A stretch of 63,667 nucleotides of DNA from Octopus bimaculoides (lineage: Eukaryota): contig NC_068984.1 in assembly GCF_001194135.2 (NCBI RefSeq), positions 85,789,777-85,853,443 on the forward strand. Direction: 5' to 3'. The notes under the pieces are model-generated. The model was not told the DNA's origin and did not search any database. It saw nothing but the letters and a program-made list of their open reading frames with translations. Numbering within the stretch: position 1 is the stretch's first letter; the number at the start of each line of letters is the position of its first letter. The position numbers and the translations under genes were made by a program. Shown piece after piece: positions 8,865 through 27,228 of the stretch.

Positions 8865-9075
8865 ATATATCTGTAACGTACTATGCTGACGAGCGATAGC
8901 TAGATTTCATTCTGGTAATCGTGAAATCGGTCGATACATAGTTGAGTTTATTGTTTTAAAAAAAGTTTTTTTTTTTAAGAGTTGCTTTTCCTCTCATTCA
9001 GTAATAAAATGTGTTTATTGGGAAGTTTAGTGTGTGGCATTATTCTGTTGTTATGCCCTTATATAAATAAATATA
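8865..9075 (+). mobile_element. Short hammerhead-bearing element ending in a 22-nt hairpin and (TA)n (PLE pseudo-LTR / retrozyme-like)
   Basis: U-rich leader, hammerhead, about 95-nt spacer, GGCAT-N12-ATGCC hairpin (9036-9057), CTTATATA, then (TA)n. Homologous to 26890-27228 on the - strand. Confidence 0.6.
8880..8942 (+). ncRNA. Minimal type I hammerhead ribozyme fold
   Basis: Stem I ACUAUG(8880-85)/CAUAGU(8937-42); core CUGACGA (8886-92); stem II GCGAU/AUCGU, extended by GCUAGA/UCUGGU; GAAA (8923-26); stem III AUCG-GU-CGAU; cleavage triplet AUA ending at 8936. Confidence 0.75.
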
Positions 9076-11610
9076 TATATATATGTATATATATATATAT
9101 ATATGTATATATATATATATATATGTATATATATANNNNNNNNNNNNNNNNNNNNNNNNNNNNNNNNNNNNNNNNNNNNNNNNNNNNNNNNNNNNNNNNN
9201 NNNNNNNNNNNNNNNNNNNNNNNNNNNNNNNNNNNNNNNNNNNNNNNNNNNNNNNNNNNNNNNNNNNNNNNNNNNNNNNNNNNNNNNNNNNNNNNNNNNN
9301 NNNNNNNNNNNNNNNNNNNNNNNNNNNNNNNNNNNNNNNNNNNNNNNNNNNNNNNNNNNNNNNNNNNNNNNNNNNNNNNNNNNNNNNNNNNNNNNNNNNN
9401 NNNNNNNNNNNNNNNNNNNNNNNNNNNNNNNNNNNNNNNNNNNNNNNNNNNNNNNNNNNNNNNNNNNNNNNNNNNNNNNNNNNNNNNNNNNNNNNNNNNN
9501 NNNNNNNNNNNNNNNNNNNNNNNNNNNNNNNNNNNNNNNNNNNNNNNNNNNNNNNNNNNNNNNNNNNNNNNNNNNNNNNNNNNNNNNNNNNNNNNNNNNN
9601 NNNNNNNNNNNNNNNNNNNNNNNNNNNNNNNNNNNNNNNNNNNNNNNNNNNNNNNNNNNNNATATATATATATATACATATATATATAGTCCACTGGAGG
9701 GATAAAGGTAGAATGAGGTATTTCTGCCTCTTGGCTGAAACAGCTGTAAGGTGTTATCCCAATTTCTATTGCTATATGTTATATTTTAATAATTACTGAT
9801 ATTTTATATATTGTCATACATGTGTGTATATTGCTATAATTGTCCTTTTAGTAAATAAATAGATTGACATAATATAATATCTATAAGTTGATGAATACCA
9901 CCTTTTGATCCCCTCCATTTTCTTATTGCTCTCTCTCTCTCTCTCTCTTTATACAAATATATATATATATATACACACACACACACACACACACATATAT
10001 ATAGGGAGAGAAGGAGAGAGAGAGAGAGAGAAATATAAATACATTTTATATATAAGGTGTATATATATCATCATCGTCATCAACATTTAATATCTATTTT
10101 CCTTGCTGGCATGGGTTGGATCGTACTATATATATAAACAGTGTGTGTGTGTGTATATATATAAATATATATATATATGCACACACATCTATATGTTGTG
10201 TGTGTGTGTGTGTGTGTGTGTGTGTGTGTATGCTTGTATCTCCTATTGATATCACATGACAGTTGTAAATGAGTGTCACTGTCATGCAAGCAGTGTCGTC
10301 CATTTCAAATATTCTGTGAAAACTTTGTCTGGCCATAGGGAAAATATTACTTTACTTGAAAACAGGTGAGGGTTGGCAATGGGAAAGGCATCTGACTATA
10401 GAAAATCTGTCTCAATAAATGCTGTCCAAGCCATACAAGTAAAATAGATGTTAAAACAGTGATGGTGTTAATTATATATATATATACACATGCATATACA
10501 CAGGGTGGCCCAAAAGTAGGTTTACAGTTATTCAACTATCTCTTTCACATTCAATATATTAACAATTTAGATCTTAATTATAAAAATATATGAAGCCGTT
10601 ATTCTATGCTAATTTAGTTAATTGTAAGATAGAAATTTAAATGCAATAAAAATATAGGAGCCACAGATCCAAGTGTAGGAAGTTTGTAAGCTTTAAGCAG
10701 TAGGTATAGAGAACAACAGTGGACAGTATACAATAAGGTAGGATAACAATTTATTGATATCAAGAGTTACACACTTTTTCTCATATTGAAGTTGCAAAGA
10801 AATTGGTATTGTGTCTTATCATATACTGTCCACTTTAGTTATCTATACTAGCCACCTATTGCTTGAAACTTACACAAACACACGCACACATATATGCACA
10901 TACATTTATAATCATCATCCTTATCATTGTTGTGGTCATTGTGATGTCCACTTTTCCATGCTTGCATGGACATAGAATTCATTGAGGCAGACTTTCTACA
11001 GCTACATGCCCTTCTTGTTGCCAATCCTCACCAGTTTCCAAGCAAGGTAATAATTCTTCATAGCTAGACATGTTTTTTGTATGCCTGGTGACAGAAGTAT
11101 CAATTATTGATGCCTCATAAATTATATTTATAATTTTGAATTGTATTATATTGTAAAAATTATTAAATTCCTGTATCATATATTGTATTAAACTTCATTA
11201 ATTGATGATTCATATTGTCTACTTATTAATTTTGATTTGTAATCTCTAAATGTGTTGAAATTTGAATTTGAAAAAAGGAAACATGATTACTCCGGAACAC
11301 TTTCACTCTTATCATTATCATCATCATCACCATCATCATCGAATGTCCATTTTTTTTTCCATGTTCACATAGCTCAGATGGAATATGTTGAGGCAGATTT
11401 TTTACAGCAGGATGTTCTTTCTGTCACAAATCCTCAACAGTTTCCAAACAAGGTAATATTTCTCATGGCTGGACATGCTTTTCTTTAGAAGAATGGAGAT
11501 GAACAACACTGTTTTTATGATGATGATGTTTATTTAAAACCATCCAGTGAAGTCAGAGCAAAGGTACACACAGAGAAGCACACAGACTCACAGATATATA
11601 TGCATATATC

Positions 11611-11761
11611 ACAGGCTTTCAGTTTCTGTCTACAAAATCTACTCACAAGGCTTTAGTCAGCCTAGGGCTATAGTAGAAGACACTTGCTCAAAATGCATGC
11701 AGTGGAATTGAACCCAAGATCATATGGTCGGGAAGCAAGCTTCTCAACCACACAGCCACAT
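11611..11761 (-). mobile_element. tRNA-derived SINE (family A), 5' portion
   Basis: Reverse complement of the gtggctgtgtggt...ttcaattccactgc...gcaagtgtcttctactatagcc...gtgagtagattttgtagacagaaactgaaag consensus seen repeatedly in this window. Confidence 0.75.
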
Positions 11762-13010
11762 GGAAAAAAATCTCTGAATCCATAAAATAAAGCTGGGATA
11801 GCCACATCTGGAATATTTAACAAATGATCTTTGATTCCATAAAAGAATGGGTTGGTGAAAGCTGGAAATTTTTCATTCTTATGATATGTTTGATAAATAA
11901 TTTCTGCTGACATCTCATCATCAATTTCCAGCTCTACGTAACCCATTCCTGTCCTTTCCTCTAAAACATAAGTAGTCATGTAGTTCTTCTTCAGCAAGAA
12001 GCCTGTTTTGCTCCAGCCTTTTCCTCTCATACTTTACCCCTCTATATTCCTTATTTTCCTTGCATAAAGTTCCTCCTACTCAAGGGTTGTAGTGATGCAA
12101 GCTTCATGGTCACCTCACTCATGCTGGTGGCATGAAAAAGTACCCAATACACACTGTAAAGTGGTTGGCGTTAGGAAGGGTATCCAACCAAAGAAACCAT
12201 GTCAAACAGACACTGGAGCACAATGCAGTCCTTAGGCCCATCACATCCTGACAGACTGCCTAGGATCCATGTCTGTTTTAGCATGGTTTCTAGAGCTGGA
12301 TTCCCTTCATAACATCAACCACTTTACAAAGTGTACTGGGTGTTTTTATGTAACACTGGTATGGGTGCTTTTTTGTGTGTGTGTGTGTGTGTTACGGCTT
12401 TGACATTGCATGGTAGTTGTAAATGAGTATCAGTCATGCAAGTGGTGTCCTTCATTTCCAATCTTCCATGGTCATGAAGAAATATTTCTTTGCTTGGAAA
12501 CAGAAAAATTTGCCTCGGCAAACTTCTGTTCAATCTGTGCAAGCATATAAAAGTGATTATGAAGGTGTGTGTGTATCTTTGTTTAATGTAAGTTTTTTCA
12601 TGCTGGTACATGTAGGACAGTTTGATAAGATGACTTGTCCCAGTTTTGGCTTTGTTTCTACAGCTGGATACCCTTCCTAAAACCAACAATTCTACAGTGT
12701 GTACTAAGTGCTTTCTTTTAAGACAACAACACAAGAGAGGTCACCAAATAATTTTCAAGAGAAAGGAAAGAAAGGATAGAGGAAAGTCTACCCATCTGAG
12801 TAGGAGTGTATTTAAGAGAGTGGGGGTGGCTGAGATAGAAGGGTTGTGATTTGAGCAAGAATTGTTAACAATTTCTATCAGGCATAGCCATAATGTTGTG
12901 TTATTTTATCTCATACATATAGCCATAAGGGTGTGATGTGAAAGGGATTTGGCTGCTATGCCTATCAAGTTGAGATATCATGTAGAGGCTCTATTACTAG
13001 TTCCTATATA

Positions 13011-26135: not shown

Positions 26136-26401
26136 CTGTCTTTGACCTGCATGAGGTAACAGACAAGACAGTAACCAGCACAACTCTGCACAAAGTTCTT
26201 CTGGGCCGTCAGAAACTCTTCACTGTTGATAGGGCCAAACTCTTGGATGAAGTAGTTGATAAGCAGCTGCTTGGAGTGTTTCTTGATCTGGTGCAAGGAA
26301 ACAGCGTTGACCACTGGCTCAATCATACCACTATCATTAGCGGTCACCACAATATTGTACGGCCGTATCCACAGAGGAACATGCTCGATTTCCCAGATAT
26401 T
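26136..26401 (-). CDS. PI4KB: PI4KB exon (kinase hinge region)
   Basis: ag|[41 protein letters not shown]...[28 protein letters not shown]|gtgag, 266 bp, phases 0/2. Confidence 0.97.
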
Positions 26402-26889
26402 CTGCATTAAAGTAGAAAAATAAAAGCACATGAGTAAACTGTTCACATATAGTATCAAAGTTCACACAAAGTTCAAAACCAACATTGCAACCAGGAACTA
26501 TGAACACTAAGGTTGTGTTTAAATGATCTGTGAAAATGTATGTTGGTCAAGAGAAGGAAGATAATTTTATATATATGCATATCAAGGGACATTAAAATAA
26601 TGCTGTTACATACTGTCATGGTTTTGATATCTACTTATATCAATCTACCCTTCATTTAACATCTCTTCACAATTTTTATTTATTTAACATCATGTTCTGT
26701 GAGCAATAACATCATAGGTTATTGATTTTCATTGGGTCAATAACTGGTTTATAACATTTACAATGGCAAGACTGAGAAATGATTGCCTGTGCCAGTGGGT
26801 GTCATGAATAGCACAAGGGAGTCATTCACATACACTGGTTTTCCTCACAGTATTTACATCTCCTACAGAAATATATCATCAAAAGATAT

Positions 26890-27228
26890 ATATATATATA
26901 TATATAATTTATATAAGGGCATTACTATATAGTAATGCCTCACGCTTAGAGGGACTAAATAAGTCAAAACTACCAAAAAATAAGCACATATTTACCGAAA
27001 GCGAGGGGATGCAACTTTCAAAAAATTAACCTCCTAAAAACATTTAACTTAACGGCAAACCACTGGTTTCATAATTAATGCAGCAATGTAGTAAGCTGCA
27101 TCTTTTATTCATCAGTGCACGTATGGTCGAGACACATAAAAAATAAACAAAAATCAACATACCCCGATGTACCCAACAAAGTACGATGACTTCTGTTCAT
27201 CCTTATATATCCGTGAAAGAGGCTGGCT
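26890..27228 (-). mobile_element. Second copy of the hammerhead-bearing (TA)n-anchored element, in a PI4KB intron
   Basis: - strand order: U-rich leader, hammerhead, about 110-nt spacer homologous to 8943-9035, perfect palindrome GGCATTACTATATAGTAATGCC (26918-26939), CTTATATA, (TA)n. The 5' end runs into an N gap. Confidence 0.6.
27052..27122 (-). ncRNA. Minimal type I hammerhead ribozyme fold, sense to PI4KB pre-mRNA
   Basis: Stem I ACG(U)GCA/UGCCGU; CUGAUGA (27115-27109); stem II AUAA/UUAU plus AUGCAGC/GCUGCAU; GAAA (27070-27067); stem III ACC-AGU-GGU; triplet GUU ending at 27058. Confidence 0.7.

Follow-up and report, generated by a model that had tools for sequence, protein, structure and literature searches.

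Two (TA)n-associated elements with hammerhead ribozyme motifs in Octopus bimaculoides, probable 3' pieces of Penelope-like retroelements

The stretch of DNA considered here (the window, 63,667 nucleotides (nt) of chromosome CM046604.1 of Octopus bimaculoides, assembly GCA_001194135.2) contains two short elements that carry a hammerhead ribozyme motif and end beside a (TA)n microsatellite. Copy 1 lies at 8827-9070 on the + strand, 3' of a gene resembling UNC5C, and copy 2 runs from 27228 to 26907 on the - strand, inside an intron of PI4KB. Roughly 62 kb of the window is sequence actually read, and these two are the copies in it. An earlier note on this DNA had described one architecture for the two loci, and it is indeed present at both: a leader, a hammerhead, a spacer of 93 or 112 nt, a 22-nt hairpin of the form GGCAT..ATGCC, the box CTTATATAAAT, and (TA)n. 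Table 1 gives the parts.

The hammerheads are identified by a descriptor with exact CUGANGA and GAAA boxes, an A15.1-U16.1 pair, H at position 17, and at least 3 base pairs (bp) in helix I, 4 bp in helix II and 3 bp in helix III, scanned over both strands. The only matches in the window are the hammerheads of copies 1 and 2, and 300 dinucleotide shuffles yield none. Each carries the core C3-U4-G5-A6-N7-G8-A9 ... G12-A13-A14 ... A15.1-U16.1 with H17; loops cap helices II and III, and helix I is left open, which is the type I topology. Copy 1 reads ACUAUG / CUGACGA / GCGAU..AUCGU / GAAA / AUCG-GU-CGAU / A / CAUAGU, and copy 2 reads ACGUGCA / CUGAUGA / AUAA..UUAU / GAAA / ACC-AGU-GGU / U / UGCCGU, where the last slash marks the predicted cleavage (between 8936 and 8937 in copy 1 and between 27058 and 27057 in copy 2). 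The helix strings quoted in the earlier note are all correct, with the proviso that helix I of copy 2 requires one bulged U. Helix II is long and bipartite in both copies (about 11-12 bp in all). Helix III is short and near-palindromic (AUCGGUCGAU and ACCAGUGGU, respectively), the type found in Penelope-like elements (PLEs), just as had been proposed; AUCGGUCGAU is self-complementary with two G.U pairs, and ACCAGUGGU is self-complementary save for a central G.G. A dimer held together through helix III is predicted by RNAcofold for copy 2 (a free energy difference, ddG, of -8.4 kcal/mol) and not for copy 1. A relaxed descriptor gives a third match at 36640-36716 (+), with helices I and II of 3 bp each and no leader, hairpin or TA architecture; about 0.04 such matches are expected per window, and it has been treated as chance.

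The two copies also resemble each other beyond the ribozyme. Their spacers, whose homology had been noticed before, are 72% identical over 75 aligned columns and score 40 in local alignment, where shuffles average 19.9 (standard deviation 3.4; z = 5.9) and none of 2000 reaches 40. The leaders align as well (p = 0.0035 against shuffles), the 40-48 nt at the 3' ends match in BLASTN with E = 2e-6, and about 260 nt are colinear between the copies in a MAFFT alignment. On this sequence evidence, copies 1 and 2 are homologous outside the ribozyme too.

Pairs within the ribozyme were counted from a hand-made structural alignment, the MAFFT alignment of this part having misplaced the helix I bulge and helix III. 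All 11 invariant core positions are identical between the copies, in agreement with the claim that the CUGANGA and GAAA core is kept and with the exact descriptor match, and the only two free core positions, N7 (C/U) and H17 (A/U), both differ. The 13 core-proximal pairs are standard in both copies; both partners have changed in seven of them and a single partner in one, leaving five as they were. Under random substitution, the chance that all seven doubly changed pairs would still pair is p = 0.0034. Identity in the stems is 42%, versus 72% in the spacer, so that the stems are, in this comparison, more diverged than the spacer, the opposite of simple purifying selection. Such divergence suggests fast compensatory turnover or an exchange of ribozyme modules. 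Together, the retained core and the compensatory pairs are a strong hint, coming from two sequences, of selection on the ribozyme, and they support the view that the hammerheads are genuine and vary in the way that a ribozyme under selection would. The proposal of selection on ribozyme structure is therefore upheld as far as the 13 kept pairs and the seven double changes carry it, but with n = 2 it does not stand apart from module exchange, which would account for the diverged stems equally well.

At their 3' ends the copies agree closely. The hairpin base, GGCAU/AUGCC, is identical in the two, and ATGCCCTTATATA is present exactly twice in the window, once in the 3' end of each copy. The association with (TA)n, another claim of the earlier note, is confirmed: both 3' ends adjoin (TA)n, and copy 1, an insert of 244 bp with (TA)n on either side, sits inside an ancestral (TA)n. 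The 5' ends differ. Copy 2 extends past the 5' end of copy 1 by at least 75 nt (n = 2, with the 5' end of copy 2 in an assembly gap), and in this extra sequence one frame is open for 24 codons up to a TGA at 27156-27154, a length that is not significant alone.

Comparison with Octopus sinensis and Octopus vulgaris, at the loci around the orthologue of the UNC5C-like gene with 10-kb flanks each, places the arrival of copy 1. The gene itself (3424-5388, +) is an intact, single-exon open reading frame (ORF) of 654 amino acids (aa) with ZU5, UPA and Death domains; it matches CM046604.1 exactly and has orthologues in O. sinensis and O. vulgaris within the same protein cluster. The DNA 3' of the gene is 92.0% identical to O. 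sinensis and 90.8% to O. vulgaris up to exactly 8826, and alignment restarts near 10024 (O. sinensis) and 9950 (O. vulgaris). Both sister species share the start of the (TA)n, and neither has a trace of copy 1 at this orthologous (TA)n. By this comparison the (TA)n at the copy 1 site is ancestral to the three species and has been a landing site repeatedly. Copy 1, which two sister species lack at this (TA)n, is on that evidence an insertion that arose only in the O. bimaculoides lineage, unless it was lost in the other lineage. The split between O. bimaculoides and the O. sinensis/O. vulgaris lineage has been reported at 13-33 million years ago (PMC13282606). At the same (TA)n, both sister species hold a different, AT-rich insert of about 1.2 kb (15687-16896 of the fetched O. 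sinensis locus and 14956-16197 of the fetched O. vulgaris locus), which contains a foldback whose 131-nt arms show 97% complementarity (15968-16098 / 16203-16333 in the fetched O. sinensis locus).

The 3' side of copy 1 runs into an assembly gap (9136-9661) with TA repeats at either edge (9071-9135 and 9662-9689), and no portion of the copy 1 element spans it. The interval orthologous to the gap region is unrelated sequence in both O. sinensis and O. vulgaris, and for that reason continuity across the gap cannot be shown. Right of the gap, a 261-bp segment (9690-9950) that is single copy in the window and missing from both sister species terminates in runs of (CT)n, (TA)n and (CA)n. Of the seven assembly gaps in the window, four directly adjoin TA tracts (2116-2179, 9136-9661, 27229-27423 and 51757-51992). 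TA microsatellites appear to break this assembly; therefore, elements that target TA would be under-assembled.

Copy 2 has a different setting. Stop-free segments at 27940-28221 (-) and 26135-26461 (-) encode PI4KB exons with the PI3_PI4_kinase domain, and copy 2 occupies the intron between them in sense orientation; because of this orientation, it would be transcribed with the pre-mRNA. A PI4KB-bearing contig of a more distant cephalopod has exons 80-85% identical, introns that are not alignable, and no hammerhead.

Table 1. Coordinates of the two copies, their parts, and the TA tracts and assembly gaps around them (positions in the window)
Feature	Position	Strand	Remark
(TA)6 5' of copy 1	8815-8826		portion of ancestral microsatellite
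Copy 1 T-rich leader	8827-8879	+	5' end of insert as assembled; aligns with copy 2 leader
Copy 1 type I hammerhead	8880-8942	+	descriptor match
Copy 1 helix I	8880-8885/8937-8942	+	6 bp
Copy 1 core CUGACGA	8886-8892	+	
Copy 1 bipartite helix II	8893-8922	+	5+6 bp
Copy 1 GAAA	8923-8926	+	
Copy 1 helix III	8926-8935	+	3-4 bp
Copy 1 spacer	8943-9035	+	93 nt; homologous to copy 2 spacer
Copy 1 3' hairpin GGCAUUA..UUAUGCC	9036-9057	+	22 nt; distal part imperfect
Copy 1 3' terminal box CTTATATAAATAA	9058-9070	+	
(TA)n with a few TG, 3' of copy 1	9071-9135		continues into gap
Assembly gap	9136-9661		inside TA tract, 3' of copy 1
(TA)10 3' of copy 2	26905-26886		unique intron sequence beyond
Copy 2 3' terminal box CTTATATAAAT	26917-26907	-	
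Copy 2 3' hairpin GGCAUUACUA..UAGUAAUGCC	26939-26918	-	22 nt; 9 bp in predicted fold
Copy 2 spacer	27051-26940	-	112 nt
Copy 2 helix III	27067-27059	-	3 bp
Copy 2 GAAA	27070-27067	-	
Copy 2 bipartite helix II	27108-27071	-	4+8 bp
Copy 2 core CUGAUGA	27115-27109	-	
Copy 2 helix I	27122-27116/27057-27052	-	6 bp; needs one bulged U
Copy 2 type I hammerhead	27122-27052	-	descriptor match
Copy 2 T-rich leader	27153-27123	-	
Copy 2 extra 5' sequence	27228-27154	-	75 nt, starting at gap edge; not in copy 1
Assembly gap	27229-27423		5' side of copy 2; cuts copy 2 5' end
(TA)8	27424-27439		beyond gap, 5' side of copy 2

Elements of this general kind have been known for some years. The pseudo-long terminal repeats (pseudo-LTRs) of PLEs carry minimal hammerheads, most genomic copies of which are single and have been ascribed to truncated PLEs (Cervera & de la Pena 2014, PMC4209133). 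The PLE hammerhead families are described there as 'full of covariations' and of 'extreme sequence variability', which the 42% stem identity found here fits, and the G10.1-C11.1 pair is listed as highly conserved (PMC4209133). Minimal PLE-type hammerheads with a short, near-palindromic helix III likely cleave as dimers (PMC4209133, PMC6765202); dimer-type PLE hammerheads are also the subject of Lunse et al. 2016, as cited in PMC6765202. The copies in the window resemble the PLE minimal hammerheads in being type I, with an open helix I, a short near-palindromic helix III and a longer helix II, and in occurring as dispersed single motifs; compensatory variability within one genome would be a further likeness, suggested here by two sequences. 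They are unlike them in that helix III keeps 3-4 bp and a loop, nearer to the 'canonical-like' variants; in having G.U or A-U, rather than G-C, at 10.1-11.1; in the unusually long, two-part helix II of about 11-12 bp with an internal loop; and in that no flanking ORF is seen at either copy.

Several groups of retroelements combine some of these features. Among the PLEs of the Hydra clade, which occur in Mollusca, hammerheads are universal and nearly all families insert into (TA)n (Craig et al. 2021, PMC8557442). These elements share with copies 1 and 2 the hammerhead, the insertion into (TA)n and a short length (less than 3 kb), but assignment to the Hydra clade rests on the reverse transcriptase (RT) and endonuclease protein, of which the window holds no coding remnant. 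Naiad PLEs also target (TA)n, lack canonical hammerheads, and are present in cephalopods only as old remnants; Neptune PLEs have a reported bias toward microsatellite insertion together with hammerheads (PMC8557442), and a Neptune-type source for copies 1 and 2 is possible. Metazoan non-LTR retrozymes (Cervera & de la Pena 2020, PMC7229834; preprint of Li et al. 2026, 10.64898/2026.07.22.740005) are like the copies in that their units are AT-rich, measure a few hundred bp and contain a single type I hammerhead, and in that dispersed monomers occur; they are argued to be non-autonomous derivatives of PLE pseudo-LTRs, an origin that copies 1 and 2 may share. Unlike them, the copies are not tandem in the assembled sequence and lack the tertiary contacts between loop 1 and loop 2. 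The SINE-like (resembling short interspersed elements) Sm-alpha and Sj-alpha of Schistosoma are likewise short, dispersed, non-coding and hammerhead-bearing (PMC6765202), but their hammerheads are canonical and active, and a promoter region precedes the ribozyme. In the copies the leader is a T-rich, low-complexity sequence, and no promoter boxes were identified, no scan for A/B boxes having been made; the (TA)n targeting and 3' hairpin of the copies are not features of Sm-alpha or Sj-alpha.

For cephalopods, 235 Rfam hammerhead hits have been reported in the giant squid genome (2020, PMC6962438), and PLEs are an annotated, expanded order of transposable elements in Octopus (2022, 2026; PMC13282606, PMC8967140). 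The literature search found no paper on the octopus element described here, on the hairpin and box at its 3' end, or on the variant 10.1-11.1 pair. The suggestion that the family might be undescribed accordingly holds for this particular element and not for its kind, since PLE hammerheads were reported in 2014 and (TA)n-inserting Hydra-clade elements of Mollusca in 2021. Each ingredient and their combination is already published; what has not been described in detail is their occurrence in octopus.

Both loci are probably solo 3'-terminal pieces of hammerhead-bearing retroelements of the PLE kind, belonging to two diverged subfamilies and inserted into (TA)n. Truncation from the 5' side is favored over a dedicated short element because the 5' reach of the copies differs while their 3' end is identical. 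Going by what has been published on PLEs (PMC4209133, PMC6765202, PMC8557442), the source element would carry a 3' region of about 250 nt (leader, hammerhead, spacer, hairpin and CUUAUAUAAAU) as its 3' UTR/pseudo-LTR downstream of an ORF for RT and endonuclease, and this region would be repeated upstream as a pseudo-LTR. Where a transcript spans two such units, the hammerheads could pair via the short, near-palindromic helix III and cut after A8936 or U27058, trimming the RNA to unit length. The conserved 3' hairpin and the UA-rich tail probably serve in recognition by the reverse transcriptase and in base pairing with a nicked (TA)n target, a role that we infer here ourselves. Target-primed reverse transcription that stops early would then leave 5'-truncated copies with a constant 3' end beside (TA)n. 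As single copies, the two ribozymes of the window are probably inactive now.

A number of observations weigh against this reading, beginning with the ribozymes themselves. No hammerhead family is found by Rfam in the whole window at the gathering score, or for either copy searched alone at E <= 10, the matches given being TA-repeat look-alikes of microRNA models; the miss may stem from the insertions of 19-30 nt in helix II and from the tiny helix III. The G10.1-C11.1 pair is missing from both copies, copy 1 having G.U there and copy 2 A-U, although U11.1, because it occurs in both, is probably a lineage trait rather than decay. The minimum-energy structures of RNAfold keep helices I and II in copy 1, without forming the full hammerhead, and helix II alone in copy 2, for which the canonical fold (-16.1 kcal/mol) is 3 kcal/mol worse than the minimum (-19.2 kcal/mol) and a CACUG/CAGUG pairing competes. 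With two copies, moreover, the covariation could also come from swapping of modules between elements rather than from stepwise compensatory change. The silence of Rfam, the non-canonical pair and these folds are also what would be seen if the hammerheads were look-alikes, either an AT-rich repeat matching by chance or ribozymes already dead in the source element, and PLE hammerheads are known to cleave poorly in vitro even as dimers (PMC4209133). This explanation is nevertheless highly improbable: the descriptor that finds both sites matches nothing in 300 shuffles, the motif stands at the equivalent place in two homologous elements, and variation is confined to positions that a hammerhead tolerates. 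The remaining difficulties for a PLE origin concern what accompanies the copies. A profile built from the two copies finds no third copy with nhmmer in about 130 kb of cephalopod sequence, that is, the window and four loci, which added some 69 kb (the O. sinensis and O. vulgaris loci and two further contigs) and do not amount to a genome-wide search. No RT or GIY-YIG ORF is apparent, there being no YxDD or GIY..YIG motif in the 519 stop-free segments of at least 45 aa in the window. Finally, no pseudo-LTR or second copy, direct or inverted, is present near either locus in the assembled sequence, where gaps adjoin both.

The lack of a nearby ORF in the window scan would suit a dedicated non-autonomous short element of about 250-500 bp, SINE-like or derived from a 'monomeric retrozyme', that has a 5' end of its own and, as part of the same proposal, recruits the machinery of a (TA)n-targeting PLE by means of the 3' hairpin and tail that they share. 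The earlier note had read the loci as non-autonomous elements of this sort. In favor of it, both copies are small: copy 1 measures only 244 bp and is (TA)n-bounded on both sides, and copy 2 with its gap would measure no more than about 520 bp between TA tracts if the estimated gap length is right. There are precedents as well, in the animal non-LTR retrozymes reported as PLE pseudo-LTR derivatives that occur as dispersed monomers (bioRxiv 10.64898/2026.07.22.740005) and in non-autonomous PLE derivatives of Chlamys that share 3' ends with autonomous families (PMC8557442). However, the copies have no common 5' end, the at least 75 nt of copy 2 beyond the start of copy 1 fitting truncation better; gap lengths are estimates, and n = 2. 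A dedicated element is therefore considered unlikely, though it deserves to be kept in mind. Its fullest version is similarly doubtful: a family of dedicated short non-autonomous elements, undescribed so far and recently active in octopus, which have a variant hammerhead (R10.1-U11.1, a long two-part helix II, invisible to Rfam) and reach (TA)n via a 3' hairpin and UA-rich tail recognized by a Hydra- or Neptune-type PLE enzyme, with many copies hidden in TA gaps. That the copies are members of a tandem non-LTR retrozyme array making circular RNAs, with the other monomers inside the assembly gaps, is very unlikely. The unit size and a GC content of about 25-30% do fit retrozymes of 150-450 bp and <45% GC (PMC7229834), and each copy adjoins a gap, but the assembled sequence contains no head-to-tail repeat of the hammerhead unit, only single units beside TA tracts. 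Copy 1 is flanked on both sides by TA tracts and not by another unit, and the 3' end of copy 2 leads through (TA)10 into unique intron sequence. In addition, the open helix I has no loop 1 and hence none of the loop 1-loop 2 contacts of canonical retrozyme hammerheads, and helix III is of the minimal PLE type. The label 'retrozyme-like' used in the earlier note consequently fails in its strict sense, as the defining tandem repeats are not seen in the assembled sequence, and a check for tandem or partial-tandem arrangement near both loci came out negative there. The sense orientation of copy 2 between two PI4KB exons might, as with the conserved hammerheads in amniote introns, suggest a host-recruited intronic ribozyme that regulates PI4KB pre-mRNA. 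This would be extremely improbable: the homologous copy 1 is outside PI4KB and species-specific, the orthologous intron of the distant cephalopod has no hammerhead, though the introns cannot be aligned, and almost no activity is to be expected from one minimal hammerhead on its own.

Two other routes to further copies were tried and rejected. A metagenome scan with the pattern GGCATTA-N6-10-ATGCCCTTATATA gave five matches, bacterial or otherwise unrelated and without a hammerhead. The fragment of a LINE (long interspersed element) RT at 2-367 (-), itself a transposon remnant, was used to reach more octopus DNA, but its matches are at most 78% identical, and the contig fetched in this way, which is not from octopus, has no DNA similarity to the window and no further copy.

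Other repeats are scattered through the window. The motif GCTGGCATGGGTTGGA, which follows ATCATCATC...TTTAATGT, occurs five times versus 0 expected (at 8797, 10105 and 27471 on the + strand and at 23418 and 25206 on the - strand); it is probably the head of an abundant SINE-like octopus repeat, and several of its copies adjoin TA tracts. A tandem array at 22777-23305 comprises 20.4 copies of the 26-bp unit TGGTGATGGTGCCACGTAAAAAGCAC with 88% matches and gives long spurious ORFs on the - strand. Further transposon remnants are a mariner-like transposase in two broken ORFs (30525-31702, -) and hAT-like ORF pieces (60922-61715, +).

The present picture of PLEs or of hammerheads is left unchanged by these two loci. 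They add cephalopods to the animals in which hammerhead-bearing, microsatellite-targeting PLEs can be studied, and they provide a dated case of presence and absence, copy 1 being found in O. bimaculoides while the matching (TA)n of O. sinensis and of O. vulgaris lacks it. Hammerhead counts for cephalopod genomes that are based on Rfam overlook this variant. Lastly, the 3' hairpin and the CUUAUAUAAAU box constitute a testable candidate for an RNA handle that would direct a PLE enzyme to (TA)n.

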